Below are positions 14,841 through 48,474 of a stretch of DNA of 64,000 nt, in pieces; the first letter of the stretch is position 1, and each line of letters starts with the position of its first letter. Origin of the DNA: Dicyema japonicum (Eukaryota > Animalia > Dicyemida); NCBI GenBank assembly GCA_011109175.1, contig RDEW01000021.1, forward strand, positions 73,080 to 137,079. Direction: 5' to 3'. The position numbers and the translations under genes were made by a program. Below the pieces are notes generated by a model. The model was not told the origin of the DNA. It saw only the letters and a program-made list of their open reading frames with translations, and searched no databases.

Positions 14841-14875
14841 TGAAAAAATATAATAAAAAGTAATTCAGTAAAATA

Positions 14876-15358
14876 TCATTCCATTCTCTGTCGCTTAGAA
14901 TTTGAAGGAGTAATTCCATTAAAATCAAACAGCAGCATGTATTCTGGGGGAAGTGGTCCTTCATCGAGAACCAGAGACTTCAGGTGGGTCTCAGACAAAG
15001 GGTCCAACGGTTTGGCCACGGCTGGCTGACTAACAAGGAGATGTCTTAGAGAGCTATGGGAAAGAAGAATATAGAGACCTTCCATAAGGTTGACTACTAA
15101 AGTCTATCTTCCCTGAAAGACTTGGGAGATAGGCAGAGAGGCTGCGGTCGATTATCTTATTGGAATAGTTTTTGAAGATCAAATCAAGGCCGTAATACTG
15201 TAGTAAATCACAGTACCCAATTACTTCGTCTGGTTCTGAATTATAATTGAGTTTTTACTTGGAAGCTTCTTTAGTAAGTAAAAAGGTCCTCCAGAAACGA
15301 CAGACAATTGATTGGACGTAGATACCACACTCTTTACTATATTATTTGAGTCGTCCAT
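14876..15358 (-). CDS. MED19: Mediator subunit 19, copy 1 (introns of 23 and 25 nt)
   Basis: GPFYLLKKLP..EVIGYCDLLQYYGL...LSAYLPSLSGKID...SSLRHLL...LDEGPLPPEY matches the MED19 core (GPFYL...LSNFLPDLPGMID...SSLRSLI...GPLP). Confidence 0.9.
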
Positions 15359-15449
15359 TGTCCCCACAAAAAAATTATATTTTAAATTTTTTAAAAAATT
15401 AAGAAATAATTAATTTTCTAAAAGATTTAAAATCAAAATTTAAGTATAA

Positions 15450-16120
15450 ACAGGGTTAGAAAATAAAGAATCACAATGCTAGCTAAGTGATCACAGAAGG
15501 ATGTCAAAACGATGAGGATAGCGAACCACATAATGGGCCTTAGTCTTCTCATATCTCGGATGGTTTCTGAGATGTTTGAAAAGGTGTCGTATAGGGAGTT
15601 GTTTTGTAGGTTGGTTACCTTCACGAATTTTCATTGCCATTCGGCGAAATCTAGTGCCTTCTAGATATTCACTAAAGAGTAGGGTGGAACACAGGAATGG
15701 TTTACTATCCATACAATATTGGGGCACCTATTCACACATGTCTATTTGATGCTGTTTAAGATTTTTTTGCCCCTTTTGACTACAACCCCCACTTGAGAAG
15801 GACCAAGGAATTTTCCGACTAGGACATAGATCTTCTACATGTGATTTTTGCAGTCAGCCTCTTGAGAACGAATGGAAAATCTACCACCTTTCATGTCAAA
15901 GGCGATCATGATGGACGAAAACAGTATATGATAGATCAATACGGAGAGTCCTCATGATGAAAAGAGTACTTTTTTATTCGAGACGAGCAGCGGACTCACT
16001 GCAAAAGTTGAGAAAGGTGGTAATATATTGTATGTGTCAATGATCGGTTTCGTGGTCTGTCTTATGGGGAAAGCGTCCAAGGGCATCAGGGATTCCTCTT
16101 TCGAATAGTTCAAACAGTCC
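15450..16120 (-). mobile_element. Degraded CRE-like RT region
   Basis: KRLTAKITC...GKFLGPSQVGV resembles RRLADKVAC...SPIQMGVGV of the 4829 element. Confidence 0.45.
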
Positions 16121-16521
16121 TCTTAAGACTTCATCTTCCTATTTTGAACACTCATTCTGGCTTCATCGTGTTTGTATGAAGCCGGGAAGGAGTGAATATT
16201 ATTTTTTCATATTCGCGGTGAGACACCTGCTATGGCATACTGGAATAAAATAGTCATCTTGTATTTACTTGTGTTCTCTTGGAATTCACTTAATAATCCA
16301 GTATTGAAGTCATTCTTCAAATAATGACTAAATAATTTAATAAACTTTGTAGAGAAGTAATACTAATGATTACAGTTTCCAGTAAGAGTCCATCCCAACG
16401 GAGAAGATAAGGAAACTTAAAAATAGCCCTCTCCTCCAAAAATGATCAATCGTCGGTGATGGACCGTTAAATCAATTATTAAAGCATTGTCTGAAATTAA
16501 GAGTAGACTAATATATATCCT

Positions 16522-16927
16522 GATGGGATGACCCTTTTCCCCTTCACGTCTGGAAGATCTTTGGTCTGGGACGCAACTTGCATAGACACGTTCTCAAGCA
16601 CGAACATTTTTAAATCGGTTCAGACACCTGGAGCAGCTGCTTCGACTGCGGAAAACCTAAAAATCAAAAAATATTCTTGCCTCGAAGATCGCTACCGATT
16701 TACTCTTGTTGCGACCGAATCATCGGGAGCCGTTGGTCCAATGACGGCAGAATTCTTGCAAGAACTCGGAGGATTGCTTGCCAGAAAGGCAATGGATCAA
16801 CGAGAAGGGTTATGGCTAAGACAAAAGATAGGAATAGCCATACTCCGAGGGAACTCGTTCGCAATCCACGCAGCAGGCTTCCTCAACTGACATTTGTTTA
16901 ATTGTTAAAAAAATTTTTGTTTAAAAA
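16522..16927 (+). mobile_element. 5'-truncated CRE-like insertion with 12 bp TSD
   Basis: Open REL frame (DGMTLFPF..GRSLVWDATC...KIKKY...AILRGNS), A-rich tail, TSD AATATATATCCT at 16510-16521 and 16928-16939. Confidence 0.9.
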
Positions 16928-16937
16928 AATATATATC

Positions 16938-17631
16938 CTAATTAACAAGAATTCTCGAGCATGTTGTATCCCCTTCTTCCCCCTTCGTGAAACACTGGAA
17001 ATGACGAATCATCTGGCAAAATAATCGACTCTAGTTTCCCTTCGGAATTTTCTTTGACCTATGTGACCCTCGTGTTGAACCACTATTTTGGAAAATACTT
17101 CCCGTTCACAATTTTTAGAATTTCATCACACAAACGAAGAGATTCATTTTTTGATAAAAACTCCACGAATCCATTGCAGCCATAAGTTACCAATTGGGGA
17201 AACTCAGTTATAGTGTATATTGGAGACTCCTATACGTTTCCCAACAACAGCGTTGACAAAACGACTTTCATCTTGCTTCCATACATCTTTCAAAAAGGAC
17301 AGACACTCATCTTCGGAGACCACAGTCGTTATTTTTTTCGTCACCGTTGAGCCTGCGATCGAGAGGTGAGATTCTTATCAGCTTTCCTTTCTTGGATTTC
17401 TCATATCCAAGAGTAAAAAACGTTTAAAGTTTTATCCTTCTCTTCTTTGGATTGTTGACTAGTAAACTTGCTAATAAGAATGAAGTTTTAACGACCCTTT
17501 TTCAATATTTTTATTCGTAAAGAATTATTCTGTTTTCCTTGTGTTTTAAAGCACTTCCATCATAAATATATTTATTACATTAAGAAACAATCAATTTGAG
17601 GGTCATACGGTAGACTGCGTGGCCATTCCAT
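16938..17631 (-). CDS. Unassigned multi-intron gene candidate (~200 aa) with apparent 1-nt indels
   Basis: GT-AG introns of 22-25 nt join MEWPRSLPYDPQIDCFL..., KFTSQQSKEEKDKTLN|KSKKGKLIRISP, VVSEDECLSFLKDVWK...GKRIG|FPQLVTYGCNG; about 3 single-base corrections needed; head-to-head with the CDF gene. Confidence 0.45.
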
Positions 17632-17749
17632 ACAGGATGGGGAGATTCGCTCAATGAACTCTGGATTTGGAAAAAATTGAAAAATTATTAAAAAATAAAA
17701 TTAATTAAAAAATTAATCAAAAATAAAATTAAAGTATTATTCAAAAACA

Positions 17750-18960
17750 ATGACTGATACAGATTCAACTGAAGAATGGAAAATACCACTAAAAAGTCCA
17801 GATATATCACATTTGATAAAAACCAGTTCAAAGGAGATAAAGTAATAATAATTGTGATCAAGAAAATATTATAAACAACAGAGATTGTTAATGAGGTCAA
17901 TAAGAAAGGCTGAGGGAATCGAAGTGGATGATTATAATACAAAGAGTAAGCAGGACAACTACCTACTGATTGGTATATTTCTCCTTAACGTTGTAAGTTC
18001 TAGTATGAACCAAAGTTACTATTTATAGGGAAAATAGTGGCCACGGTTATTAGCGGGTCATTGGCTATATTATCCAGTACAATTGACAGTGCCGTTGATA
18101 TATTGACTATAATTGTCATTTATGTCACAAATAGACTTAAAGGAAAGAAGGATTTACACAAATATCCATTTGGTGCAATTTTCACTAATTATAGGTCGAA
18201 AGTCACTGGGGACAGTTGGGGTTCTAATTGTGGCCGTTTCAATGACCTTTGCTTCACTAGAGACTATCGGAAAGTCAATTATATCACTATTCAGTGGGGA
18301 TATCCAGATTAAACTCAACTCATTTTCCATCGGAATCTTATCTACCACAATTTGTGATTATTTTATTAAATTTAGGTTCAAAATTAATGATTTTTATAAT
18401 TCTTTTTCGTAGTAAGAAAGAGATACTTAAAACAATCAAAAGAGACTGCTTCAATGACGTCATTACAAACACGTTTACGTTAATTTGTGTTTTCATAAGT
18501 TATCATGTTTGTATATTTAGTCACTAAGGGGGTTAGGGAGTGGAACCATAACTGGAAATATTTGGATCCCATTGGGGAATGCTAATTTCTCTATATGTGT
18601 CAGTGGGGTGGATCACCACGTGTATTGGTAAGATTAGTAGTCAACTCATATTTAGGACTAATCGGACGACTCACTGGGGTTACAGCAGATCATCAATTTA
18701 TTCAAAAGTTAGCATGGATTTGTCTAAATCATCATAAGGAAATTGTAAATATTGATACCATCAAAGGATTTCATTTCGGCGATTTGTTGATTGCTGAGGT
18801 TCACATTGTTTTACCCCCGAATATGGAGTTGAAGACAGCTCACGATATTGGAGAGTCTCTTCAGATCAAATTAGAACACTTTGAAGATGTACAAATCGCA
18901 TTTGTTCATTTGGATTATGAACCCCACCACAACCCTTTAATTGAACATAACTTTAAATAA
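17750..18960 (+). CDS. Cation diffusion facilitator, Mn-CDF/MTP8-11-like
   Basis: KYYKQQ, GSLAILSSTIDSAVD (TM2 DxxxD), KYPFGR, DCFND (TM5 DxxxD), YLDPIG, EVHIVLP...AHDIGESLQIKLE...AFVHLDYE; one apparent missing G at ~18575. Confidence 0.9.
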
Positions 18961-19039
18961 TCACTCTTTATACAAATTATTTTCTATATTAAATCAACCT
19001 TATGATTTTTTATTTTTTTATTTTATCAATCATCCACAA

Positions 19040-19345
19040 CATCAGACTATCTTCCCCTTTGAAGTCGGGGAACCTCTTGTCCGGATGCACCGACACATTC
19101 GTCCCTTGCAACATACATCATAGTGCCTCTGAAGCCTGTTCTGCTGTTGAGAAGGCTGAGATGTCAAAGCGAGCAAAGTACCCAAGGATTTTTTTGTTCA
19201 TTCCGCTCACTGTTGAAACCTCTGGTTCCCTTGCGCTTTCGACGCTGGAATTACTGATTGGATTTCTGCACGAACAGGAGATCCCTGTGAGCGCTGGTGG
19301 CTATTTGAGAGAACTTCGCTCGCTATTCTGAGAGGGAATAGCTAC
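19040..19345 (+). mobile_element. CRE-like 3' fragment
   Basis: IFPFEVG, EMSKRAKY...FIPLTVETSG, LRGNS. Confidence 0.6.
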
Positions 19346-19399
19346 GCCGTCAGGACGGTCGCTGCATAGGTGGAAACTCTGTCCCGGCGACAAAAATTC

Positions 19400-20830
19400 A
19401 TAAACAGCAGAAGATATCCGACTAAGGGTTATCAGAGATAGTATCTTCCTCAGTGTTCTCAGTAATATCACTGATCTTAGAGTTTTATCGGTTCCTTGCT
19501 CTTTCCTAGTTAATGAAAAGGAATTAAAATTCCATGACCATGTTTCAAGAGGAATGCGTCTCAAATACCTTATTGAAAATCTTTGTAATGAGGGTTGTCA
19601 GTTCGCCTGGTGCATACTTGATCATTTCTCCCAGCTCCCCTGTTGCTAAATTCATTGATTGCCAGGTTAGTTTCTTTTGTAGAGATAAGGTAGATTCAGG
19701 CTTCTCGGTCCATAAATGAAACTCCACATATGAGGTTTCATTTTCATTCAAAGTCCAGAAAAATGTTCGACAATAATCTCAGTTTTTTCTTTAATCCAAT
19801 ACATTTTTCCTTGACTGTCGTGTATACAAATAGTTGAATTCCTCTCTGCAAAAGGCGAACTGCACGAAACATTTGCGTTCCGTATCCCAACTTCTCAATT
19901 TCACTGATACGTTCGTCAATTTTCTTGACTTAAATTTCCTTCTTCCTCCTTCTAATCTCCCTTGCAATACAATTTCTTTCTCTTCTTAACACGTTATAAG
20001 TATCATTATTTTTACATGATTCCATTCTCAGCCACAATTTTTTGTTTAATTGATAGTGAACCAATTTCGTGATCGAAGACCCCTTTAAATCCTACCGGCC
20101 TTTTATCCCCAAGCACGTCGAAACTTGCCTTCTTTATTCCATCAACAGTAGCATTCCAAATTATGTTCACAATCTCCTTCTTAATTACCATACAATAATC
20201 TTAACGCGGCTTCTCACATAAGCATAATTTTCCACAATAAACGATCCAGATCAGCTCTCTTCGTTCTAGCTCCATCTATTCCGAAATATCTTTTCATTCT
20301 GAAACGTGCAACCAGCAGTTTATGATCACTATGAGTGATAGGTGCCTCCATAGCTGCGGGAGTCTGTTAGTAAAGCACGAAGAGATCTTTTACACATAAC
20401 ATAATCAATCTGGTTGTATATCCGGAAATAGTCACCATTTCCATCCTTTCTGAGTCCAGTCCACGTAATCTTATGTCTCTTATTGTGGTCGAATGCAGAA
20501 TTACAAATAAAGTAATCAAACACGTTACAGAAGTGTACAAGCGACTCTCCTGACATATTTCTTTTCCCTGGCATTCCCGCCCATACAGGGTTCTCTCCAT
20601 GGACAGTGACCCACTTTTGCATTCCAATCTCCACATAAAAAGGTCATAAACAAGGCTTTAAGATCAGAGATGGTATCCGTTAGTGACATGTAAAACAGTT
20701 CAAATTCATCGAGATTTGTGGAAACCCTCCCCATTGTGAATGTGTAAACATTAATTTTGGATATAAAGGAATTATCTGTCCTCCCAATCTTAATCTAAAG
20801 TACTGCTATTCTGTCATTGACCCCCCACAC
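19400..20830 (-). mobile_element. RTE-like LINE remnant (APE to start of RT)
   Basis: CGDWNAKVG, ITWTG...YNQIDYVMCK...SDH, KYAPGE. Confidence 0.8.
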
Positions 20831-21394
20831 TCTGTGGTTTCCCCATCAAGACATTGACTTTGTTTATAATAAATTGTGGTGAGTTGGGCCATCCATCTCC
20901 TGGACGAGGAAAACAGTGGATCATTGAAAGAAACGGCTGCCCTTAAACACTGAAAATCCTAATACCAAGCCAAATTGATGGCTCAGGTGGACGTATAGTT
21001 CAGGTCTGTGGTCTTTTGAAATAAATTCATTAATATTCCACTAGAGCAAGCCTCTAGACAAATCGTCCTTGATTCACGGGGATGTCGAAAGAGATTAAAG
21101 TTTCTCATTGAAGGGCTTAAAGCTAGATAGGGAAGCAAAGGTTTAGTCCCATAATCTCTGAAAGGATGGTGCGAGAGAATAGTTTGCTATCTTCCAATCT
21201 ATTGGATCCTCCTTTGAGAAGTCCCCACAACAGCAGGACGTTTTCCTGTTTTATTAGGAAATCTCTGGTTCTGCGGTCGTGGGACCAGATCCTCTCAATT
21301 ACTAGTCAACTGTTGACTCCCCTTAAAGTGATTGGGGAAGGGTAATAAAAATTTAAACAATCGAAAATTAGATTAAGTCAATAAGTTCAGATAG

Positions 21395-21837
<443 letters not shown>

Positions 21838-22499
21838 CTATTAATATGTAATTGGAGTACATTAAAATATCTTTTAATGAACGATTTTACTAGGCTCACC
21901 AACATAAAATAATTAATAAATTATTTAATTTAAAAATTATAATTTAGTTTGATGAATTTTTCGATTCTTTTCATCACGAAAATATTAATTTTTTTCTGTC
22001 TAAATTTTCCTAATTTTTTTTGGTTGAGGTGGTGACGCATCTCAAATTAAACTAATTTCTTTTTCACTCTTTTTCAAAATTTCTTTCACGCTAGCATCCT
22101 TCAACGTTCGAGGACTAAAGTCGTCGGTCAAAAGGAGGTCACTCTGCCAGGATCTGAAACGATACAACATTACTATCTGCTGCTTGCAAGAGACCATTGA
22201 TTCGGATCTTGATGTGGTATCCGTCCTGGAGATTCCACCACCTTCCCATCTCACACTTTGTTCCCCAAATTTGTCCACGTCCGTGTCCTGGAAAGTCTAT
22301 TATGATCTCCCATTCGACCATAACCCTATTACTGTGACTATCGACCTTTTATCACCCTGAGACTTATACAAATTCACTTACGTTAACGATAAAAGAACAC
22401 GTTGTGGGAATTCAAGTCTGCCACTGAACGGTCTCTCGAAGAGTTTGTGGTTGACAAGTTCCACCCCATTGAAGAAGATCAAAAAATAAATTTTTTGTT

Positions 22500-23100
22500 T
22501 TACTTATCAAAAACGCGCGAAATTCCCCTGCGAAAAGGCCTGATGGCTTTAGTGTCCCCTCCGCCCACTCCACAACCACCCACCTGACAACCCTTATCAA
22601 ATACATTGCCACGGTTTCGATAACTCCTCTCCCACTGAAAGGACGGTACTTGCATCAATTGACCTCATCAAGCTTTTCATCGCACCTCACGTGTAAAACT
22701 GTCCAACAAAATTCTTCCTCTAAAATCCCACCCATCTGGTCATGCTCTTGAATTTCGATAAATGTGCAGTTCACGGTTCAGGCATCTTCCAAATGAGATT
22801 CCGCAGGGTTCTATTCACCTTGAGCCTTTTCAATCGCCTACCTGAGTAGCACTCGGACTACTCTAAACTCAATTGTCCTTACATATGTCGATGACATTGT
22901 CATCGCTGCCAGGGTCGCTGACATTCAGAGAGCCACGTTACATTTGCAGCATCACCTGGACATTATGAGTGAATACTCCAACTGGATTTCCTCCTCTCCT
23001 ACTAAATCATCTATCACTCTTTTCACGTCTGACAGGAGACATTTTAACTCTGTCACTACACCATTGTCCTGACAGATCTTGGTCTTACCATATTTCTTGA
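22500..23100 (+). mobile_element. LINE RT remnant
   Basis: HGF, LTYVDDIVIAA; degraded. Confidence 0.6.
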
Positions 23101-23289
23101 AATCATGTGAGGATATCTTGTTGCAAAGGTTGAAAGTGTGGACTCCAATAATTAACGCAGATTTTTGTCTGGTGGTCGGTCATCTTGCTATGATTGTGCA
23201 GGCGTCATTCTGTTAATGCTAAGCTGTAAGATCAGGATTCTTTAGTTCAGAGAAAAAGGGTTAAGCTTGATATTGTTAGAGCGAGAAGT

Positions 23290-23500
23290 TACGCCCGATC
23301 AATGGTCATCAGAGGGAGTTTATTAAAGGGATCCAATAGGGAAAGCGGATGGTTCCCTATTGTTAATCGTATAAGATATGAAAACACCCAGATGACATCA
23401 CGAGAAGGTGAATCACAATGTCATAGAATTAACACTACCTTTTCAGGGACTAAATTAGACAGCCCATCCTTATTGGAGTCAAATAACTTTATATATCCTA
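23290..23500 (+). mobile_element. Possible LTR-retrotransposon integrase remnant
   Basis: HQREF-like segment and EGESQCHRINTT resemble rve 'DQG.EF' and 'GNGQCER.NRT'; very degraded. Confidence 0.3.
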
Positions 23501-24399
23501 AATTTCTTTAGTCGGTCATTTAATCCTCATTAAAGATAAGAAAATGAATTAAGACTAGCGACAACCGCAAATTCACAGCCAAGACTATTTAATGACGTCA
23601 CAAAAGGCTAAATGGACACATTAATGAAAAAACAAGTAAATTTCACGTAATGAAAACCACGTGGGTAAGTTGCTATAAACACGTAATAAAGACCATTCGG
23701 GTGCGATATCATATGACATGTTAGAGACCACGTGAACAAGCTACAATAAAGACATCTTAAGACCACGTGGATGTGATACTATAAGGGGATGTTATATAGG
23801 TTACGTGCTACTAGAAATGATGCGAATATAATGAGAGAAATAGAATCAATTTATTTAAGAACCACAACAAAGGGAATCGTCAAAGTCGAAATAATCATAA
23901 TTATTAGACTTTGCGGCAAGAGGACTGATGAGGATCAGACTGAGAAAGAATCCAACCAGAATGGCGGAACAAATGTGGTAATTGTACATCATAAACAACA
24001 GCATTAGAATGTAATTTATGAAAAATCTGACTAGCATAATGAGGGAATTGACGTAGTGAAGAGGGGTCATAAGGACCTTCGAATAACTGGAATTTACATT
24101 TTTAATACTTTCTCGATTGATACTTGAGATTTATGAAGATGCTTGCGATTCTCAGAAGTTCTGAGGCAAATGTGAGGAGAATTGTTACAAATATTGTCAT
24201 GCAGAGATCTTTGAATAAACTCTTTTATTACCGCCGATAGTATTCAGTTTAAATCTGGAAAATAAGATCACAAGTCCCTTCCAGTTGCCATTAAAATACA
24301 TAATCATCAATTAAGCGGCAGAATTAATATTTAAATATTAATTTGGTTGGCCTAATTAAAATATTTTGATTTATTTAAAAAATTTATTATTTATTCATT

Positions 24400-24702
24400 A
24401 ACCCCCGATAACCGAGAAAGAAGTTAAAGTAATTAAGTGTATCCAGTTTCCACTTCTACAGAAACAGAGTCCATCCGGAATCAGCATAAAGGGTAAAAGA
24501 CGTCCATAGTTGCAGTCGTGGAAACCCCTCCAGTGGAGTGGGGGAGAGCAAATGATCTTTTTTCATGCCTGCCTGGCACTGGGCGCCACCTAGACAGGTG
24601 GATCACATGACACCACTCTAATATGAAGAGAGAGGAGGAACAGACGAACAAAACAGAAACTTCTATCAATTAGCCACGAAGCATCACATGGCGTCACGCG
24701 GC
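24400..24702 (-). repeat. SINE-like family A, full copy
   Basis: Colinear with the 8405-8718 copy. Confidence 0.85.
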
Positions 24703-24734
24703 TATTTTCAAAATCTTATACCTTTGACACTTTC

Positions 24735-25205: not shown

Positions 25206-25329
25206 ATTGCTTCAAAAATATAATAAATAAAAAGGCCTTGACTGCGTGACTATCCCTCTTAGGATGGTTAGCGATAGTCTCTCAAATCACGGGGATCTCT
25301 TGTTCGTGCAGAAATCTGATTCCCTAGAC

Positions 25330-25480
25330 CAGGGGTCGGAAACCGTGGCTCTTTGAGTTTTTATGTGGCTTCTTCAATTATCACAATGACTACTTACATC
25401 TCCAATTATTACTATTTAAACCAAAGAAACACCGTTTTATAAATTTATGAAACATTGCATCCGAATCAGTCACATTCCTT
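25330..25480 (+). mobile_element. Isolated hAT left end
   Basis: CAGGGGTCGGAAAC preceded by CCCTAGAC (Charlie-like target); no matching right TIR found. Confidence 0.5.
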
Positions 25481-25639
25481 ATAAAAAAGATTAACACAAT
25501 CGAAAATAAAGAGAAAGTCATACAAAATGGCCTCAATGACTTGTTTTCTTCTTAAAGATGTATCCAAAGCAATATCAAATCAGAAAAAAAACAAACTCAT
25601 ATGGCCCAGACGGAATTTCTCTTATTCTGCTGAAACACT

Positions 25640-26915
25640 TGGGATCAGCATCAATAAATGCATCATCTACAACACATCACTAGACATAAATAGCAGACTG
25701 ACTTTATGGAAACTATCAAAAATTGGTCCAATATTGAAACCGGGAAGACCGAAGAACGATCCCGGGTTTTACAGACCAGTTTCCCTTATATGTGTTTGTA
25801 GAGATCCTGGAGAAACTGGTCCTAAAATCTTATTCGCCCTCTCTCCCACGACCTACATTCCAACATGGCTTCAAGGAAGGATTTCAACAACCTCCTTCCT
25901 ACAGCACTAATGAAGTTCATAACTGAAGGACACAAGAACAAACCAAAACAGGAAAAATCGGTCATATGTACAATCGACATTCAAAAAGTTAGACTCTGTC
26001 CTGAGAAAAGACAAAAATATTTTTGACAGCAAATTTTTAAGTGGACGCCGAGGGAAAGTGTCCGTCGGAAACAAAAGTTCCAGATCGAGTTATTACCCAA
26101 TGGTGTACCCCAGGATCTGCTTTGTCACCAATCCTTTTTAATTTGTTTTTGAATGATCTCCCCGTACCTATGAATAATAATGACATGCTACTTTCCTATG
26201 CCGATGACATAGTTGTCGCATCTAGGACGTAAATGTCGAACATGCTAAAGAAAGACTACAAGGAATACTAAATAACATATTTGGATGGTTGTGCGAAAAT
26301 CGATTAAATGCATGTTCCGAAAAGTCAGCAGTCACTCTATTTACTAAGAATAGAAAGATGGGAACGCAAAAAATTGATGTCATGTTAAATGGAGTGTCAA
26401 TACCACAAAAGAAATCGCAGAAGATACTGGGAGTAACTTTTGATACTTTCCTCTGCTTCTCATCCCATGTGGAATCTATACTTTCCTCTGTCAACCTGTG
26501 CAAAGAAAATCAATTTTGTAAAAGTTTTCCTTTGGAACTGTGGAGGAATTTATCCGCCAGGTATCGGGACCCTATACAAGCAGTATGTCGAACCAACAAT
26601 AGGCTATGCATTTGCTGCATGGGGATCTAACCTGTCGGCAACGAACCTAACAAAAATTCAAGAGATCCAGTCAAGAGCAATAAAATTACTGGAAAAATAT
26701 ACAGATAAAGAAATTGCCCCCAGAGCACTCGAGTCTATCATAGAGGCAACTGGTGGCAATTTCAGAAGAGGAGGGAAAAAAGACCCCCGTCCGTATAGAA
26801 AATGTGTGGGGTCACGGTCGGAGCATCGAGAAAAAAAAGATGTTGAGAGATGCCGGGATCACTGAATATTAGTTAGTGGTTAAGACGGTGTTTCTTTTGG
26901 CTTTTTATTTTTATT
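25640..26915 (+). mobile_element. LINE family B RT region to 3' end, degraded
   Basis: PILKPGRP..DPGFYRPVSLI, PGSALSPILFNLF, SYADD, KILGVTFDT, family B tail. Confidence 0.85.
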
Positions 26916-28330: not shown

Positions 28331-28572
28331 GAGGTTTAGTGTGTCGGACAATTTTCTTGTATGACCTTTTTGTTTATTTATAATTTTAATAAGTAAAAAT
28401 AATTTTAATAAATAAAAATGGAAAATCCCCGAATGTTCCCGTCGAAAATGGCGCCATATAAGACATTCCTAAAGAATACCGTGTTGGGTCACTATTCACA
28501 TCGCTCGCATTTTTCCAGTACTTTCGCTTCCTTACTAAAATACTAAATACCATGATTGCGCATCGTATATAC

Positions 28573-29545
28573 CAGGGGTTCTCAACCTTTTTTTACTCGT
28601 CGACCCCTTGACTTTTTTTTCGACCCTCCTAATATTTAATTGACCCCTTAAAACTTTTTTATTTAGAACAGACAATTCTAAGTAAAATTAGTTAACTATC
28701 TAAAATGAATTCATTGTTAATAATAAATCAATCAAAAAAAGTATATAGTCGATGTTAAGTTGGTATCTCAGCATAAATCTATAATAAAAAAAAGAATTAA
28801 ATACCAATGGGATCCATGTTATTGATATTTTTTCACCAAAGATTCGGTATTTGACACTATTTGTGTTATTTTTAAACGAATATCTCCTCCAATGGACACA
28901 TCCAATTTGTTTCGTTCTTTATTTACAATTCGATGTAGAATGCTAAATCCGCATTCAACACAGTATGATGTCGGAAAATATAGTAGCAATTGTGCTATTT
29001 CTGTCCACAATTTTGGATAACTCTCATTGCAATTTTATAGGATGCAATTAGTCCTCCTAAATATAATTTAAAATAACAACTATTGTTTCTTTCATTACTT
29101 TTTGTAAAAACAGTGTCAATCGTTTTTTGTTTACGGAAAAATCCTTTAATTCTTCAAAATACTCTAATGGTTTATCTTTTTTATTCGAATGTTTTCTCCT
29201 AAGATGATCCAACAATTTGGACGGTTTCATTGCATCATTTGATAATGACTTATAACACAGTAAGCATATGGTCAATCATCAAAAGAATTTTTTTATAAAT
29301 CCAAATGCCAAAAATTCATTTTTATATTGACGAATTTTTACTGTAGAAAGACGACTCATACACGAACAAAAACAAGCATGGTAATTCTAAAAATTTTAAA
29401 GAACAAAGGTTTACCACTTTAAATATAAACTAAATTATAAAATAAAAAAATTAAATTTATGTAAATTTATTTTGACCCCTTACGATCGATTTGGATTGAT
29501 TTTAGACCCCTGGGGGTCGAATCGACCCCAGGTTGAGAACCGCTG
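28573..29545 (-). mobile_element. Charlie-type hAT internal-deletion derivative
   Basis: 16 bp TIRs (15/16 match) CAG(G/C)GGTTCTCAACCT, TSD GTATATAC/GTATAGAC, BED-type CLLCYKSLSNDAMKPSKLLDHL joined to the dimerisation motif FPTSYCVECGFS. Confidence 0.92.
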
Positions 29546-29944
29546 GTATAGACAATACTATAGCGTTAACACTTTGCCCCAGGAATCTGGGTTAGCAGAA
29601 ACATCCAAGAAACTTAAGCGTTCTGCCTACCTATTAATGAGGGCGGCATGCTTTAGAAAACTAAACTTGAGGTTAAAACTAACCCCCAAATTAGCTCATC
29701 CTTCTTGTTTTTCTGAGTGATTACTTCTCGGTCTCCACCAAAGTTGTAAAACAGGTAACTCCATAGAAAACACCACACTAACGCAATTTAATAAGAGTCA
29801 AGTCCAGCGATATTTCGTTCATAAGCCACCAAGGATTGGTCCTCAAGTTAGAAGAGGTCGAAAAATCATTTTTTTATAAATCAAACAGATATTTGTTAAT
29901 TATAGGTTAATCGGTCACTTTATGAATTATAAATCACTTTCCTT

Positions 29945-38299: not shown

Positions 38300-38930
38300 T
38301 ATTAATATCCTTGTTGAGATCCACAAGAAGAGTGACCCTTACCTTCCTCTAAAAGGGAGTCTGTTTTCATTTTTGAAGTATTGTTTCATTACTATGTATT
38401 CAGGAGCATCTATGTCCATACGTTCCCAGAGTCTCCACCTCGATTCAATGATTTCCACGCTCAGTGGGACTGATTTGGTTGCACAAAATAGTCTCTAAAT
38501 TTTCTTTGGTCACTCCGAGCCTGATAGTTTTCGTAAATGATTTTTTGGAAGGTATCTACCTCAATCCCCCCTCCCCCATGTTCCCGAATTTTAAATCAAC
38601 ACGTTCTTCCAAATTTTTTTCATGAATTTTCTTCTCGATGTTTTCCATTTTCTTATTCGCTGCCTCTATGAACCTCCTGTGCACAACGTCCTTACTGTCT
38701 CCAAGTAAAGATCCCAATTTCCCCCAACCTTCTTCACCACACTCAGGCTCTCTAGTAATTGTTATAAACTCGGTCTTGTCTTTGTTGACGTTCAAAAACC
38801 AGTCCTTTAATTCATTTGGGATTGTGGCCGTCGTGGTCATTAATGTGTCATATGTGGCACTAAGGAACAGTGACCCCCTTTATGGTTTCCTTAAACCTCC
38901 AGAAAGATCCGGGTCGAAATGAAAATATTA
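38300..38930 (-). mobile_element. RTE-like LINE remnant
   Basis: LKDWFLNVNKDKTEF...KLGSLLG, homologous to 63605-63994. Confidence 0.7.
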
Positions 38931-40338
38931 AAACAACTGCGAAATTTAAAAGACTTTCTTATCAATTTTGTGAGGTTATAATACATTTTTGAGCATTTCC
39001 TAATCACAGTAGGAAAACCAACATTTTTATCAATTTTCACCGCAAAATTTACTAAGTATGAATGACCTTCAAAATATATATCCTTTGTACTTCCTCTCCA
39101 AAGCCTTTTAAATTAACCAATGGCCTACCCTATCTCCACCTGACAACCCAAGGCTCATTTTGGGTGCATGAAGGAATTTGAAGCAAAAATAGCTTTAATG
39201 TTAATTTTACGTATTTTTGAGTCAAAGTGGCAATGGAAGATATCCACTCTGACTTCTTTGAGGTTGGAGAACCAGGTGATAGTGGAATATTCGTAGTTCG
39301 TTTCGTCCTACTTGATACTCGTTGGTCTCCTACGTGTTAGTGAGGCCGGGGTAACTCAACATAACTTAATTCAAAAAGATATGTTATTTTAGTCGACTAC
39401 TTTTAAGAGCACAAGTCCTCTATTTTGGGAATACGGGTTCTTAATCTCAATTTCGTTGAGCTCAATATTTGGCGGTTTCCTTTCAGATGAACCGACTCCC
39501 AATTACGATTCGCAAAAAAATCTATTTTGATTGATGTGGTCAGCAAATAAATTAATCTGACCCCTATTTGTGGGTTTCAGGATTATTTGCTCAGTCATGT
39601 CTGGTAAACATCAAATCTCTACAAAATTCATCGAAAACATCACGGCTCACAAATTTTGATTAAAATTGAGGCAACTATCCATTTATCCAAAATTGTGAAA
39701 AATATAGAAATATCGGCTGTCCCTGAAATCTAGGCATCCAAGAAATCTCTATTTGTGATCTTTGATTTATGATCCTTGGGAACTCTTGACTTTTGGCCCG
39801 AAAATATAGTCGGGTGACATGAGTTGTCGTCTATGCTGTCAAAAGTGATGTGCAACTGTTTTTGTTAATGAAAAAATAATTTGTGATAAGGCAGCTGCTC
39901 AGTAAAAGATAGCATTAGATCGCAATATTAGCGTAAATGCGTACCTTTATATTGAGGAGCTGCCCAACTACGATAAAATCTACGACCGAACATAATATGC
40001 AGTTAGTTTTCACTGCAAATTTAAACTCGTGCCAAACTGCTAGTTTAATTGATTTGTAAAAAAATTATTGCGTGCTTACATTTTTGACATGCCAAATGAG
40101 GACCATTTAAATGGCTCATTTTGTCGGTATAAATTGTAGGGCTTTCAACCAAAATGAGATGAATCGACTGAATTTGGTGGACCGTTTTAAAGGTAATACT
40201 AAAGTCAAAACTGCTCGCTAATGGCCTTTGCACAATAAGGCAACCCCTTAATGACTTGTCTTTTGATTTCAAGTGCTGTTATTTTTCTGTTTTTATATCA
40301 GATAGCGCTGTAATTATACCTTAATGGTCCATTCTTAG

Positions 40339-41058
40339 ATTGTGACAAATATCCAGTCTTGGTGACAGATCAGGACCATTCTATCGTCTACCAAACAGGT
40401 TTCTTTATTTTTTAAATTTTAGAAAAACAGTGTTTCAATTGCGGAGTTAAGTCCACCCCCCTTTGGAGGAGGGATAACAATGGAAACTACCTCTGCAACG
40501 CCTGTGGAATTTATTTAAGGAACAAAAAGAAGCATCGCCCCCTGGCCCACTCGAAGAAGCTGAACGTAGTCTTTTTAGTCACATGGTAGAGTGTTTCCAG
40601 GAAAACCGGGCAAGTTTGCACAAACTGCGAGACTATAACGACCACTCTGTGGAGGAGAAACGAAAATGGGGAGACCGTGTGCAACGCCTGTGGTCTCTAC
40701 TTCAAGCTTCATAGCGTATACTGAGCAATCTAAACTCTAGACACCTCGACCTCCTTCATTAAACAAGTCATCCATACAGACGCGACATCGGAGACTTAAA
40801 AATTCAACTCCTGTGATTCACTACAATCCGACAGTCGAGCAAAGTGACTTAATTTACAACTACAATTCCAATCAACTTCCTCAAAGTCATCAGAATGGGA
40901 CAAAATTTGACTACATAAACTACAACCAGCAATTTTACGTTGACCAGCACTACAGATCATTCTCAAATGACTCCTTCGGAATGTACCATCAATATGGGAG
41001 ATTTGATGCCACCCTCAACACAGAGGGGTACTACCTGAGCCGATTCGAAAATAATTAA
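40339..41058 (+). CDS. GATA transcription factor with two C4 zinc fingers; 5' exon(s) unresolved
   Basis: [26 protein letters not shown] and [32 protein letters not shown] joined via 24-25 nt introns; start codon not fixed. Confidence 0.92.
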
Positions 41059-41517
41059 TATTTTTACGTTATTTGCGAATAAATTACTTTTTAATTTTAG
41101 TAACCAATTTACACATGCGGTTTAATTTTCACATATAACCGCTATCTGTTATGAGGGTATAACCGACTTTATTCTGATAATATATTCTCGGTTTCAGACA
41201 AAGTAGAGTGATCAGGGGTTTAAGGACCATTTTCATACTCTGGTGGTCGGCTTTAATGCCTGTCATTGTTATTAGCGAATAGATGGAATCACATTAACCT
41301 CCATTCTGTACGTTCCCAAGGTTTTTTGGATTGGACGGGATTTGAACGAGAATGCCTCCCGTATTGGCACCTGATTGTCCGAATATTATCTTTCTGATAT
41401 CTTCTGGGTCCATCATCTCGTTCATGTTCTTCAGAGATTATCTATAAGACGGGGGAATTATGATAAAATATTGTTAAATGGTAATTTGCTAATAAATACG
41501 ACATTTCGAAAAATCTA

Positions 41518-41689
41518 TAGTAGAACCAGAAATCCATAGAAGAATTAGAAATCCCAGAAGACTGTCCCTATTTTCTGGTCTTCTAGTGAGGCCGGGGTCA
41601 CTTAACTAACTACTTTACGTAGACAACGTTCTATGATACACTGTTCTACAAATCTGCTTCGACATACGGTTCTAAGTCTGGTTCTACTG
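41518..41689. mobile_element. Tc1/pogo-type MITE carrying a LINE 3' fragment
   Basis: 13 bp TIR (C/T)AGTAGAACCAGA, TA on both sides; gtgaggccggggtcacttaac LINE tail inside. Confidence 0.7.
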
Positions 41690-41749
41690 TACATCCTATA
41701 GTTTCCTGTTTTATATGAAACGGTTCATACCCTCTCGGAAAGCACGTAG

Positions 41750-42940
41750 TATTTTTGAATTTTAACTTTTTAAGAAAACCGACTAAATTAAGCACATATT
41801 GCTATGAACCAGCCAACAGAGTAGTTGAGGCTAAGTTGGGCAGGTGGAATCTGTTTGGTCATATTCTAAGAATGGACCAACCACATCAGCGATTATCATC
41901 ATGGAGAACTACTCCGCACTATTTGGGAAAAATTCCTTGGCATCCGCATGCGACGCTTCCTGAAATTCTTAATGGGGATTTATGGCGTCAAACAAAGGGG
42001 GAGAAAGAGATTGGTAATCAGTAGGGGGATTCTTGTCAAAGTCACTTTACTAAGATGCTACCTGTATGGACGGCTTCTCACTTTCCAACCGAGTGTTGAC
42101 GGCATCTCACTCCGGATATAACTCAGAGAAGGCCGAAAACCTTAAAAGAAAGAAGTAAAAAAGCCTCAGAGGACGTTTCGTTTTCAAACCATTCGCCGTC
42201 GAAACATATGGGATCATGTTCCCTGACTTTATTGCATGGCATGCTTATTGAGAGGAAAAAAGGGATATGAGAGAAGAGCTCCCTAATTGAGTTAAAAAAG
42301 TCAGAAAAAATTTTTGAGAGAGCTGGTGATGTAAATCAAACACTTTCTCTGGAAATTGCGGAATTCATGAAGTAGACTTCACCCTCTTGATGTTCAATGT
42401 CAGGGTGTTCCTGAAGGCAAGATGGAACTGTTTGGACATATACTTCGTATGGACCTGTGGATCCCCGCGAACGTGGTCATGTAGGATTACTTTGTTCTGG
42501 ACCCTCCAACTTTCCGTGGTCGACAGAGGACAATCCTACCCACCGTCTTTGATGAAGACCTTAAGGAAATCGGGAGAAGCCTCAAGGACGAGGATGACCT
42601 CGACAGGCTACAGGACATGGCAAAGAGTTATCAGAATGTTCTGTGGACTGTTGGATCGGGAGTAGGTTGACTTAATGTTAGTTATGCTGCGTTCAGGAGT
42701 GGAAATGGATACAGCTACAAACATTGGGATGGAAGAATACTTTGTTGACAGTGGAACTCGCTTCTGTAGAAGTTCACGAGTCATATTTCCTGGAGTACTC
42801 AATGTGGATCTCATGTATGTAAAAGGAAATCTACGACATGGAGAATATACAAGAGAGGTCGTTCACTACCATGGAAGGTGGAACCGCTTAGTTGAATTAA
42901 AATTCGCGGGATTAAGTTGCTGTGAAAACTTTTCTTAAGG
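41750..42940 (+). mobile_element. Cluster of RTE-like LINE fragments
   Basis: RWNLFGHILRMD at ~41840, a frameshifted equivalent at ~42420, CVQEWKW-like APE fragment at ~42690. Confidence 0.6.
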
Positions 42941-43858
42941 TATTTCTACACAAACTGGCTCTTTTTAGTATCAAACTCCTTGATCCTGACGTGTTCCTGC
43001 GATTTCAGAAATTGTCTCTAAGTAACGAAATTGTCTCCCGGTAGCAAGAATAGTTGGATCCTTTTGAATACCGGCCAGGCATTGGGCGTCTCCTTAGGTG
43101 GTTCCAATGACGCCATATGAGGGAGGAAGAAATTTTTTAACCAATTAGCCACATAGCACTACATGGTGGCATCACAGAGTCAATAACCTAATTGACTCTG
43201 TAAAGAAATAGCACACAAGAACTTCCTTGGCGTTATGCAATATCATGAAATAGACAAAAGAAAACAGAATTTTTCATAACTGTTATTTAATTTTATTTAA
43301 ATTTGTCAACCTTATAATATTCATTGAAATTTATTGAATGTTTACTGTGAACTCTAAATTTTCACTACGTATGAAAATTATGGCTATGTTAAAAATTTAT
43401 TAGACTTTTGTCAATAATTCCAATAGTAACCAAGATCATGCAGCCAAAGGGCATATAGAATTATAGTTTATATGATTTTTTGTATTTTTAATAATATCCA
43501 GCCACACTAAACAATGAGGGCGGGTTTCATATGGCAGCCACGATTGTCGGGTGTTCACAAAGTGAGTGAGACCCAAGGCAGAGAAAACGATTTCAATGAG
43601 AAAAATAGTCAAGTGATGGTGAGTGGTCCAAAACTCCGAGTTAGAATATATTGAACGAATCTAAGAAAGGGAACAGAACCTCTTTTTCAAAAGACGGATT
43701 TCAAAGATTGACAGAGTGATCATGTATAACTTCCAATCTCGAGATGTCAGGACTGAAGCAGGGAAGATTATGAATTGAACATTTCATATATTTAAATGTT
43801 ATTTTTATAATATTTAATAATTATTTGATCTATTTGAATTTAAAATAACAAACCAAAC

Positions 43859-45410
43859 ATGTCAGATTGGTCAGCTTATTTTTCAACTAAAGTTTATAAA
43901 ATTTTAATCAGATAGAACAAACACGAAGAAACACCCGCTAAAGAAACGGAGAAATATTCGGAAAAGCGACACACTTTATTAGATAAGATTAAAGACTTTC
44001 AGACCAAAACCTACTCAAAGCAACCGTTAACTGATTTACGGTCTGATCCAAACAACCCTCTCTATTCCGTTAACAGTTTCCGCGATATTCCACTTCGCCC
44101 GGAACTCCGTAAAGGTCTTGTCACCCTCGGCTTCGTTAGTCCTTCCAAAGTCCAAGGAATGGCTCTTCCGATAATCCTTCGAGACCCGTTCATGTTATGA
44201 CGTCATCATAGACCTTCCAATTTGATTGCTCAATCTCAGAGCGGGACCGGTAAGACTGCCACGTTTGCGATAGGGATGCTCAATAGAATAAATTTGAATA
44301 TCCGTTGTGTTCAGGTTTTTTCCCTCCTCAAACTTTCAGTCCCTGTGTGTCACCCCGACCTATGAATTGGCCGTCCAAGTGGCTCAGGCAATTGAACTTA
44401 TAGGACAGTACATGGAAGGCTTGTCGGTCTACCTTGCTATCCGAGACTCATGTAGTCATGAATGAATCCATTTAGACGTGGATAGAAATTCTGAAATTAA
44501 AGACCATGTGGTCGTGGGAACCCCGGGAAAGTTGTTGAATCTCTTAGAGGATCAGCAACTGCTTAATATGACGGACTTGAAAGTGTTTGTGCTGGATGAA
44601 GCTGACATAATAATCGACCAAGGAGAGAAAACACGTGCAATTGACATTTACAAGTAAATTGTGTTTAAACTTGAGCTGTCTCCCCCGATCCTGTCAGATT
44701 CTGCTGTTCTCAGCCACTTTCACGGATTCTGTTATTGAACTGGGAAAGCAGATGACGGAAACAACGGAAATAATCCGACTTTCTAAGCCGGAGATGACTC
44801 TGGAGAATATTGAGCAGTATTATATATACTGTATCGGGGACGAGGAGAAAAAGTCGGCGATAGACTGCATCTACCAGAACATGGGAGTGGAGAAGGCCAT
44901 AATATTCTGCAACGTAAGGGTTTATGTGATCGCAGACGGTGTTACAATCCAATATTCTGTTCGACTTTTTCGTTGGAATGGGGTACAAGGTGGTGGTGAT
45001 AAACTCGTCCTACAATGTGAAAAAACGCGCGGAAGAGCTCAATAGGTTCAAGAGTGAGGCCCACGTACTCATTTCGACAAACGTGACGGCACGTGGTAGT
45101 GGGGTTTCTAATGGGTGCAGGGTTGGATATTACCGGTGTCGCAATTGTCATCAATTACGAGATCCCAGTGAAAATGGATGGTTCTCCTGACTATGAGACC
45201 TATTTGCATCGTATTGGACGAAGTGGAAGATTTGGGGAGATGGGATTCGCCTTCACATTTGTTTCGAGTCAGAATGAACTGAACTTAATTAAGCGAATTG
45301 AGGGATACTTTGGTTTGTGATTATGGGAGATGGTAGAACGGCCTATTAAGGAGCTAAAATCAGGAGATTCGAAGGCCATTGGAGGACTGGTTAATAGTGA
45401 TGGCTTGTGA
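43859..45410 (+). CDS. DDX19: DEAD-box mRNA export helicase DDX19/Dbp5 (introns of 22-25 nt)
   Basis: DPNNPLYSV, NLIAQSQSGTGKT, TPTYELA, VLDEAD, FSAT, AIIFCN, STNVTARGLD, YETYLHRIGRSGRFG; frame intact after splicing. Confidence 0.95.
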
Positions 45411-45587
45411 TTTTCTACTTGATCTTAAATTTTCTTTTTTGAGCGTTTAAATGTTCTCAGACGAGTTGGCTTAGTACTTGGGATAGTGGAGGATGATGGG
45501 TTGTGGTTTGGTTCCTAGAAAATGTTGAATTTTTTCTGCGGTTGTATTTTTTTCAATAATTATTTTTTATCGGTCGAGCTGGTCAAA

Positions 45588-46352
45588 ATGGCATATCTAG
45601 TGGCTATCGTTTAATTAAATGACGCTGGTGTCCATGTCCTACTACGATTTGTCTATGAATCCTTAATTGATCTTCATAAAAGAAGGCTGTTACCCATATT
45701 TTGGAAAGGACTTCTGATTTCGATCCTAGTTGGTTTTCTGGAGAATTGGAAATTTTGTTGACGTTCCTACAGATGAACCATAAATGGCACAAAGTTTAGT
45801 GTTTTTTCGTAGCAGCATTTTCCAAGAGTTGTTATTTCTTCCGATTGTTGTCCTGGTATGAGCATTTGGATTGTTAAAAATATCAATTTCGTCCAGGACT
45901 GACGGGATATATTTTCCACGGGGATATTAGGGGTTCGAACCATCACTTATAATCAGATCTTTCAATCTATGTAAGGTTATGCATGGCCCCTTAGGTGGAA
46001 AATAAATATTTGAGTTTAATAGGAATCTGTTCTATGGAATTATTTCCTCACAGTTTGGGAATTATCAGAATCTAAAAGCTCGCTTCTGACAATTATGAGT
46101 CTTGCAACAGATCCACTTATTTGGTTCTTTGTTGAGTAAAGAGTATTCTGAGAAACAACGAGTTGGGACTGATCTAGAAAGCATCGAATTTTGTATGTGC
46201 GCAATGTCCACCTTTAGGTTTTCAGTTAAGAGGTCCAACTTTGCTACGAATACAGTCAACATTTACTTAAAGGATCATAGGATGGGTTAGGTAAGTCGAT
46301 TAATTATTTTTTGTTCTCAGTTGATACTGAGGAGTATCACGATAAAATTTAG
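45588..46352 (+). CDS. Unassigned multi-intron gene candidate
   Basis: Series of GT..AG segments of 22-41 nt (strong donor gtaagt at 46291) between stop-free pieces such as KAVTHILERTSDFDPSWFSGELEILLTFLQMNHKWHK; exact model unresolved. Confidence 0.35.
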
Positions 46353-46379
46353 TTTTTTTAAACCAAGAATTACCGCTAA

Positions 46380-46740
46380 AGAAACAAGCCCGCTTAGTGA
46401 TTCCAATTTCTCTTAGAAGCCTTCAAAACTTTTCTCGGTTGTTCCCCTCGCGATTTCTATGTACTCAGGAACACAGCGGTGCTTCAGGGGTATCATTTTG
46501 GCGCTCGTTACCTTTAGAAGGACCTCAAATGTTGTCGAGTGTAACAGGATAGTCGAGAAACGTTGGACGGTTTTTGTAACTGTCACTTGGCTTGTTTTAT
46601 AGATATTTTGTTTAGATATCGACGATCTTCTTAAACCTTGTTTTAGATATGCCCGTACCCCATGCAGCGCATAGCTGATGGTTAGTTAGGACAATATGAT
46701 TATCAGATCGAAAAGATAGAAAGTGGCTCTTTATTACAAG
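46380..46740 (-). mobile_element. LINE family B fragment
   Basis: ccatcagctatgcgctgcatgggg matches the TIGYAFAAWG region at ~26600. Confidence 0.55.
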
Positions 46741-46936
46741 AAGAAAGGGGACAAGGGCAATCTTTTAATAAAATCCTCAGCCTCACTAACATGCAGGAAG
46801 TCAAAGTGGATGACACAAGAAGTTATTAAGTGGGATGACACAAGAAGTTTTATTTCTATTAAGTAGAAGATATATTTAATAATAATGATAACACCAGTTT
46901 TTATAAAATTTAAAATATAATTTTTTTGTGGGGACA

Positions 46937-47419
46937 ATGGACGACTCAAATAATATAGTAAAGAGTGTGGTATCTACGTCCAATCAACTGTCTGTCGTTT
47001 CTGGAGGACCTTTTTACTTACTAAAGAAGCTTCCAAGTAAAAACTCAATTATAATTCAGAACCAGACGAAGTAATTGGGTACTGTGATTTACTACAGTAT
47101 TACGGCCTTGATTTGATCTTCAAAAACTATTCCAATAAGATAATCGACCGCAGCCTCTCTGCCTATCTCCCAAGTCTTTCAGGGAAGATCGACTTTAGTA
47201 GTCAACCTTATGGAAGGTCTCTATATTCTTCTTTCCCATAGCTCTCTAAGACATCTCCTTGTTAGTCAGCCAGCCGTGGCCAAACCGTTGGACCCTTTGT
47301 CTGAGACTCACCTGAAGTCTCTGGTTCTCGATGAAGGACCACTTCCCCCAGAATACATGCTGCTGTTTGATTTTAATGGAATTACTCCTTCAAATTCTAA
47401 GCGACAGAGAATGGAATGA
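46937..47419 (+). CDS. MED19: Mediator subunit 19, copy 2
   Basis: Same protein as 14876-15358; identical introns. Confidence 0.9.
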
Positions 47420-48474
47420 TATTTTACTGAATTACTTTTCTGATAGTCAATATCAATTTTAATATATGATTCTTAATGGAAAGCAAACTCCACGTACGAC
47501 CATGCGAAAATATTGCGAGTCAATTTCTTATTCCTACGAAAACCTATCATCTCGCTCCAACGATAATAAACCTCGTTGAGGACCTTCTCACAAACTATTG
47601 GAAATCAGTCTATTCCATGTTAACTAAATGGAACCAACCACTAGTTACATCTGCAACTCACTTCCCTTCAGCGAAGATTTCAGTCAAATCCTTGCTGTCT
47701 CTACCACGGTGCCAAAAAGGACTCACTTTGGGAGTTCGTTTGAGTACAAATAGTCGTATATTTGATGTTCAAGATTTTACATTGTATGTCGGGAAGAAAG
47801 ATCCTCAACAAGCACAAATTACTATAACTCTAATTCCAAAGCGACTATACTAAATGTTTAAAGTCATCGTTAATTTGATGGACTTTGAAATCCTCGTAAG
47901 CGCTGCTGCTATTTGAGCGAATCTCGCTCGCCATCCTGAGAGGGAAAAGTCACGCAGTCAGAGAGACCGTTGTAAAATTCTAATAATTTATTATTTTAAT
48001 TCGTTGCAGAGAAAACTGAAAGTGTTACGAAACCAATGTCCCATAATATTATTGAGATGGTCAAAAAAGACACCCACATCGTTACTACGGGAACACGAAT
48101 ACCTTACGGAACGCCACCGCGACTTCCTCAAGATAGGAAAGTATCTCGACCATCTCATAAAGCTATATCTGGACGCCTGCCCTAGATACGAAAAGAAATA
48201 TTCCCCTTTATGGAAATTAACCCAGGGTTCTAAAATTAACCGCAGGAAGTCTTAGATGGATACTCGGGTCATTGACTTTGACTCACTTGGTTTGATTTAA
48301 CAGTTCGATTTTCTATAACTCTGAATGTCATGTGTAATGTGTGGAACTATCACTTGGTAACTCTGTCTTCTGCCAGTATCAATGCTGTCATTTTGATTTT
48401 TAGGAAATATGATAACGCATAGAAGGGTAAAACTAAAATAATTTACTTTCCGTTATTTTGTATAAAAATAAAAG

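Follow-up and report, generated by a model that had tools for sequence, protein, structure and literature searches.

Results

Two inverted copies of MED19

The 64-kb window analyzed here (the whole stretch C113:73080-137079 in the assembly of Dicyema japonicum, a parasite of cephalopods) contains two copies of the Mediator subunit gene MED19, designated A and B, that lie head to head 31.5 kb apart. Positions refer to the window unless a scaffold is named, and the coordinates of the features are collected in Table 1. A repeat search and BLAST of the window against itself identified the two copies as an inverted repeat of 542 nt with 99.26% identity. The repeat search alone gave longer bounds (14856-15417 and 46878-47439), which BLAST trimmed to 542 nt. 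This is the only pair in the window with at least 99% identity, and the only low-copy pair of that identity in 257 kb of the scaffold. The copies were compared in a single haploid consensus assembly, and genome-wide searches covered all of its 67,542,437 bases in 377 sequences. The MED19 pair is a real, gene-exact inverted duplicate.

The gene model covers 483 bp, in which two GT..AG introns (23 and 25 nt) separate three exons, and the unspliced frame runs into stop codons. The exons were searched singly against the Pfam profile Med19 (PF10278), which has a curated cut-off of 25 bits. Exon 2 matches profile positions 14-58 (E = 3.4e-5, 24.3 bits) and exon 3 matches positions 64-105 (E = 0.014, 15.8 bits). 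A six-frame Med19 scan of the whole genome scored the same exons at 22.2 and 15.7 bits, and all of the single-exon scores are below 25 bits. The two matches are collinear, consecutive and in frame across the 25-nt intron. Exon 1 ends in GPFYLLKKLP, a sequence that may correspond to the start of the core of the family. The DNA search and the six-frame Pfam scan found these two MED19 loci only in the genome, and a third MED19 gene elsewhere was rejected as the parent of the pair because neither search detected one.

A base-by-base walk through the block found four mismatches. With the A of the ATG as the reference for numbering, one precedes the coding sequence (CDS) at -33 (A/T), and the others are at +51 (TTG/CTG), +253 (ATA/ATC) and +371 (ACC/ACT). 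In the same order, these sites lie at 15391, 15307, 15105 and 14987 in copy A and at 46904, 46988, 47190 and 47308 in copy B. They are evenly spread along the block, and both micro-introns are identical between the copies. Exon-by-exon translation gave identical A and B proteins, and the three coding differences are therefore synonymous, an outcome with a neutral probability of 0.012 (S = 98 and N = 328 sites). The divergence is 0.74% over the block and 3% at silent sites. Identity spans from -39 (firm from about -32, the sequence there being AT-rich) to 20 nt after the stop codon. It falls to the random level within 1-2 nt at both edges, with abrupt breaks at -40 and +503. An earlier note on this DNA, made from the sequence alone, had described a gene-sized, intron-containing MED19 duplicate in inverted orientation with identical introns and with identity that ends just outside the CDS; these observations were all borne out. 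The note had also counted three synonymous differences and no others. All three are correct, and the upstream mismatch at -33 adds a fourth.

An AT-rich near-palindrome (15372-15441), 82% self-complementary over ~70 nt, is centered 9 nt outside the 5' edge of MED19-A with one arm within the shared block. It may reflect chance in low-complexity sequence, or it may be the scar of a fold-back.

Table 1. Coordinates of the MED19 copies and the features around them
Feature	Position	Strand	Description
MED19 copy A block	14856..15397	-	39 nt upstream, CDS with two introns, 20 nt past the stop
MED19-A exon 1	15259-15358	-	
MED19-A intron 1	15236-15258	-	23 nt
MED19-A exon 2	15079-15235	-	
MED19-A intron 2	15054-15078	-	25 nt
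MED19-A exon 3	14876-15053	-	TGA included
MED19 copy B block	46898..47439	+	542-nt identity block
MED19-B exon 1	46937-47036	+	
MED19-B intron 1	47037-47059	+	
MED19-B exon 2	47060-47216	+	
MED19-B intron 2	47217-47241	+	
MED19-B exon 3	47242-47419	+	
tRNA-Ile(AAT) A	13909..13986	+	Convergent with MED19-A; Rfam 47.6 bits
tRNA-Ile(AAT) B	48474..48548	-	Convergent with MED19-B; Rfam 58.6 bits
Linker TATTATATTTTTT	14843..14855	-	13 nt between the MED19-A 3' edge and the old long interspersed nuclear element (LINE)
Old LINE fragment, 5'-truncated	14190..14842	-	Part 3' of the reverse transcriptase (RT) core; same orientation as MED19-A
Young LINE	10613..13846	+	Apurinic/apyrimidinic endonuclease (APE) and RT; 3,234 nt, near full-length; splits the relic
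MED19 3' relic, distal 76 nt	10537..10612	-	CDS end, stop and 3' flank; 1-nt deletion
MED19 3' relic, proximal 12 nt	13863..13874	-	Cut off by the young LINE; 35 nt from the tRNA-A 5' end

A tRNA-Ile(AAT) gene beside each copy

The only two tRNAs in the window are both tRNA-Ile(AAT), and one lies downstream of each MED19 copy. Apart from the MED19 pair, they were the sole inverted repeat that the repeat search gave for the region. tRNA-A is 870 nt beyond the 3' edge of MED19-A, or ~216 nt when the old LINE between them is removed, and tRNA-B is 1035 nt beyond the 3' edge of MED19-B. About 10-14 tRNA-Ile-like loci were found genome-wide, four of them within 130 kb on scaffold C113. The chance of such a tRNA placement and orientation at the second copy is ~1e-4 genome-wide and ~1e-2 given the local clustering. 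Of 81 positions compared, 5 (6%) differ between the two tRNAs. Compared with nine other copies, tRNA-A has an extra T in the D-loop and is one G short in the 3' acceptor strand; from its sequence it looks degenerate and may be a pseudogene.

Other tRNA-Ile loci in the genome are segmental duplicates with a kept core and decaying flanks, as in a case with 93% identity in the core and 73% in the flanks. Tandem tRNA-Ile(AAT) pairs with a spacing of 4.1-4.35 kb were found at C223:1444279-1448703, C235:173770-177938 and C376:25029 (L005, L007 and L008). Such tandem loci on different scaffolds have up to 800 nt of flank in common at 82-93% identity, which indicates that the tRNA-Ile(AAT) family spreads by segmental duplication.

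LINEs and a MED19 relic at locus A

Most of the spacer between MED19-A and tRNA-A is an old LINE copy of a family that encodes a reverse transcriptase. Measured against a consensus built from five other copies, this copy is ~9% diverged. It has lost ~280 nt internally, and its truncated 5' end starts 13 nt past the 3' edge of MED19-A. The missing part of the element was not found on the far side of MED19-A. The linker TATTATATTTTTT matched neither copy B nor the LINE consensus.

The young LINE is bounded by a perfect 16-bp target-site duplication, TTACTACACTTAAACA (10597-10612 and 13847-13862). Its 5' 790 nt are 100% identical to those of at least five other copies, and more than 1,600 candidate 3'-end copies of the family are ~97% identical. 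On this sequence evidence the family looks currently or very recently active. Insertion targeted to tRNA genes was considered for this element and rejected, as none of 20 copies has a tRNA within 500 nt downstream.

Removal of the young LINE joins two pieces of minus-strand sequence (13874-13863 and 10612-10537) into an 88-nt MED19 3' fragment. Over 85 nt, this relic shows 82% identity to the terminal 66 nt of the CDS plus the 3' flank, and the alignment scores 97 against a shuffle mean of 26 (standard deviation, 3.3). The homology breaks off no more than 2 nt from the edge of the A/B block, and AT and A7 come next (10528-10536). The fragment has the look of a 5'-truncated retrocopy of MED19 mRNA. 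It is single in the genome and is ~330 nt from copy A with both LINEs removed. A relic-like MED19 fragment was sought beside tRNA-B (z = -0.8) and at eight other tRNA-Ile loci and was found at none of them, only the match at locus A being significant. The 3' edge of the A/B block is probably the poly(A)/cleavage site, because the relic ends within 2 nt of the same point and then runs into A7.

The relic and the two LINEs bear on whether one full copy arose recently from RNA. Unspliced MED19 pre-mRNA, or complementary DNA (cDNA) made from it by a LINE reverse transcriptase, would in that event have been captured at a break or inserted by a LINE, and the copy would span the transcript. This origin is unlikely. 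It would account for a block confined to -39..+20 around the CDS, and the relic, an independent and older 5'-truncated fragment that ends at almost the same point before an A-run, speaks for it. Partially processed retrogenes are known as well (Soares 1985 and others, cited in PMC5470649). A retrocopy is expected to lose introns, whereas both are kept and are identical in A and B, and both copies lack a poly(A) tail and a target-site duplication at their edges: past the block, A continues TATTATATTTTTT and B continues CTGATAGTCAAT. The identical 5' ends and intact target-site duplication of the young LINE indicate a very young family that is active in the genome, but that family is not tRNA-targeted, and the sole LINE that adjoins a copy is ~25 times older than the A/B divergence. 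The tRNA-Ile synteny of both loci would also be left unexplained.

Flanks of the two copies

The flanks of the two copies are mutually unrelated and rich in transposon debris. Upstream of MED19-B are exons of a DEAD-box RNA helicase (44635-45320, plus strand; Helicase_C, E = 2e-8, with SAT and HRIGR motifs visible) that end ~1.6 kb from the gene, then an old repeat (46347-46688) and 209 unique nt. Downstream are 447 unique nt, repeat fragments at 47887-47975 and 48007-48248, and then tRNA-B. An open reading frame (ORF) of 125 aa (47476-47853) starts 37 nt past MED19-B and is single-copy in the genome. Its best Pfam match is a weak, sub-threshold hit to the PRP8 U5-snRNA-binding domain (E = 0.049), which assigns no reliable family. 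The ORF is unconserved and uninformative on the origin of the copies, and it may have arisen by chance or represent a lineage-specific gene. The fragment at 47887-47975 is a ~70-90-nt element that resembles a miniature inverted-repeat transposable element or a short interspersed nuclear element. It has more than 700 candidate genomic copies of ~90% identity and also matches window positions 19278-19353 and 25239-25287.

Homology does not extend into the non-genic flanks as it would in an ordinary segmental duplication, with the exception of the tRNA-Ile ~1 kb away. The spacers between MED19 and the tRNA showed no homology between A and B. A larger ancient palindrome was sought over +/-65 kb and rejected, since the inverted-collinear matches were MED19, the tRNA and pieces of repeat families only. 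Insertion of either copy into a recognizable repeat, visible as a filled versus an empty site, was rejected because neither copy splits one and the flanks of B join in no repeat family. No paralogous empty site was found at the third tRNA-Ile locus of the scaffold. A Helitron or terminal-inverted-repeat element as carrier was rejected because inspection found no terminal inverted repeats and no TC...CTRR ends.

These comparisons bear on a recent small DNA duplication, in which 542 bp would have been placed in inverted orientation 31.5 kb away by template switching or break-repair insertion, with the edges set by luck or retention bias. Sharp edges, 0.74% divergence, inversion and a short distance are typical of template-switch events. 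The AT-rich near-palindrome at the 5' edge of copy A and the mosaic of local direct and inverted duplications on the scaffold are in keeping with such an event. A random 542-bp piece that encloses the whole 483-bp gene with 39 and 20 nt to spare is, however, improbable, and the tRNA-Ile synteny is not explained, so that two coincidences are needed, one for the gene-exact ends and one for the tRNA. The all-synonymous differences and the end point shared with the relic better suit a functional or transcript-defined unit, and no filled-versus-empty structure is visible at either copy, neither of which splits a recognizable repeat. A recent DNA duplication is unlikely.

The unrelated flanks also weigh against an assembly artefact, in which the sample would have one real MED19 locus and its second allele would have been misplaced during assembly or merging. 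The published D. japonicum draft (67.5 Mb, 377 scaffolds, 36.7% GC, mean intron of 38 bp, 49% repeats) came from a pooled sample with 1.24% heterozygosity and was built by hybrid Platanus/Falcon merging, followed by GapCloser and HaploMerger (PMC6736024). Such a merged draft could misplace an allele, and the 0.74% difference between A and B is within the allelic range. Both copies, however, lie inside one gap-free 64-kb stretch (no runs of N were found in the window), and each is bordered on either side by unique sequence that bears no relation to the borders of the other. The flanks of a misplaced allele would instead be allelic. MED19 is tied to both loci by signals of a biological kind, the tRNA synteny and the relic nearby. 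An artefact is very improbable.

Other repeats were found in the window and on its scaffold. A 120-aa ORF without a Pfam hit (16528-16929) belongs to a dispersed repeat that is also present in L004 and L005 (~91% identity). This repeat accounts for a 79-nt, 94% identical inverted match between 16528-16929 and 52067-52145 that is not collinear with the MED19 pair. Scaffold C113 (1-257000) is a mosaic of older, low-copy local duplications in direct and inverted orientation with ~60-90% identity. Examples are window 19391-20845 against C113:40025-41559 and, inverted, window 25719-26888 against C113:57888-59154; window 28462-29717 is also among these stretches. The pieces may be segmental duplicates or mid-copy transposons. 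A unit of ~98 nt occurs twice in tandem at 4066-4261 with 97% identity.

Discussion

The MED19 pair most probably exemplifies a known process. The favored explanation, judged moderately probable, is an old inverted duplication of MED19 together with tRNA-Ile in which the transcription unit has been kept alike by ectopic gene conversion. Gene conversion as invoked here is a known process; the old age of the duplication is inferred, and so is the attribution of the 99.3% identity to conversion instead of recent copying.

A segment with at least MED19 and the adjacent downstream tRNA-Ile(AAT) would have been duplicated in inverted orientation long ago. As transposons inserted and substitutions and deletions built up, the non-functional DNA around and between the genes would have been replaced or scrambled, and the old LINE would have landed just past the end of copy A during this turnover. 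Purifying selection would have held both MED19 copies. With transcription units that stayed alike, ectopic (non-allelic) conversion could repeatedly overwrite one inverted copy with the other, and the tiny introns and short untranslated ends would travel within the conversion tract. The tract would stop at non-homologous DNA, so that identity would end sharply where constraint ends, at about the limits of the transcript.

A pattern in favor of old duplication with conversion is that the paralogs are far more alike within the gene (99.26% over 542 nt) than in the flanks, where no similarity is detectable. Identical proteins and differences that are all synonymous indicate that both copies are under constraint. 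Selection alone would not hold introns and silent sites identical, and an old duplication therefore requires conversion to account for the near-identity of A and B. The tRNAs are 5 of 81 positions apart and the spacers have no homology, so the shared ancestry of the loci, if any, is far older than the 0.7% of MED19. The order of ages runs from the relic (18%) to the old LINE (9% from its consensus) to the MED19 pair (0.74%), which is similar to the young LINE. This consistent order and the position of the relic ~330 nt from copy A suggest that MED19 sequence has long been present at locus A. The segmental duplicates seen at other tRNA-Ile loci, with kept cores and decaying flanks, also speak for an old duplication.

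Three observations call for a joint explanation: near-identity restricted to a complete gene under constraint, unrelated flanks, and a rare tRNA gene in the same relative position at each locus. An old duplication of MED19 and tRNA-Ile explains why the same tRNA is at both loci and, together with repeat turnover, why the flanks are unrelated as well. Recent copying through RNA or DNA explains the near-identity and the unrelated flanks but leaves the tRNA to chance, at 1e-2 to 1e-4. The earlier note had assumed that flanks would accompany an ordinary segmental duplication, and the tRNA-Ile(AAT) common to both loci 870 and 1035 nt downstream weakens that premise.

Several observations weigh against old duplication with conversion. 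No flank homology beyond the tRNA was detected by local and anchored DNA alignments with shuffle controls or by tblastn with six-frame ORF fragments, and an older, larger duplication therefore rests on one syntenic feature. tRNA-A and tRNA-B are not mutual closest relatives among the genomic copies, and the likeness of their 5' flanks is marginal (z of 2.3-4.1). A specific kinship of these 5' flanks was rejected because A matches B no better than it matches L005 on another scaffold. Conversion must also persist over 31.5 kb on just 542 nt of homology. Finally, the 3' end that the relic shares with the block, with its A-run, is a hint of RNA-end-defined copying at locus A. The end point and the A-run fit conversion limited to the constrained transcript and an RNA-defined unit equally.

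The relic leads to a further reading in which the MED19 unit would have been copied at least twice by an RNA-end-defined route without the usual marks of retroposition, once as the full, unspliced and tail-less copy and once as the older 5'-truncated relic with its A-run. This is quite unlikely. If true, such a route would implicate RNA-templated repair of breaks, or the capture of cDNA, in cis beside fragile tRNA genes, as the means by which an intron-containing gene was duplicated whole in the germ line of an animal. A single recent RNA-templated event, if true, would likewise be rare, in that a complete gene with its introns would have been duplicated by way of its transcript.

Of the four options that the earlier note had listed without a choice among them, gene conversion restricted to the functional island of an older duplication is the best fit. 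Retroposition of unspliced RNA gained from the relic, which ends at the same 3' point with A7, and lost ground through the missing poly(A), target-site duplication and intron loss. Misassembled alleles became unlikely, given a gap-free sequence and flanks that are unique and mutually unrelated.

MED19 is normally single-copy in animals, and the gene set of D. japonicum, at ~5,000 genes, is among the most reduced in the animal kingdom. A maintained identical pair of a Mediator-subunit gene is, on this background, a small curiosity. If conversion is the cause, the pair is a very compact case, a 542-nt island with micro-introns in copies 31.5 kb apart. Such a case would illustrate how an old duplicate can be made to look new by concerted evolution while transposon turnover sharpens the edges of the tract, and it would be a caveat for the dating of duplicates in a fast-evolving, repeat-rich genome.

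Comparison with known systems

The palindromic Amy and Hsp70 pairs of Drosophila undergo concerted evolution that is confined to the coding region, and their flanks evolve independently (PMC3924832). Like the MED19 pair, Amy-p/Amy-d and Hsp70Aa/Ab are mirror-image paralogs on one chromosome arm that are near-identical in the gene only. The MED19 spacer is larger, at 31.5 kb against a few kb, and the island of homology is very small (542 nt) and includes two micro-introns. The MED19 flanks are unrecognizable rather than merely diverged, and conversion is read here from one genome.

Retrogenes of the rodent preproinsulin I type are missing one intron or more but retain target-site duplications and a remnant of the poly(A) tail. 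Both full MED19 copies, in contrast, have both introns and lack a tail and target-site duplications. The likeness to such partially processed retrogenes is that of a transcript-bounded copy that still has intron sequence (cited in PMC5470649). The 88-nt relic resembles the 5'-truncated retropseudogenes made by LINEs in its truncation, in its end at a presumed cleavage site and in the A-run that follows. It differs from them in having no recognizable target-site duplication and in its location only ~330 nt from copy A, which is unexpected for a random retro-insertion.

Templated insertions and template-switch duplications resemble the MED19 pair as short, sharp-edged inverted copies with a donor tens of kilobases away in cis. 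Their ends are arbitrary, whereas the ends of the MED19 block match the whole gene and a tRNA neighbor is common to both copies.

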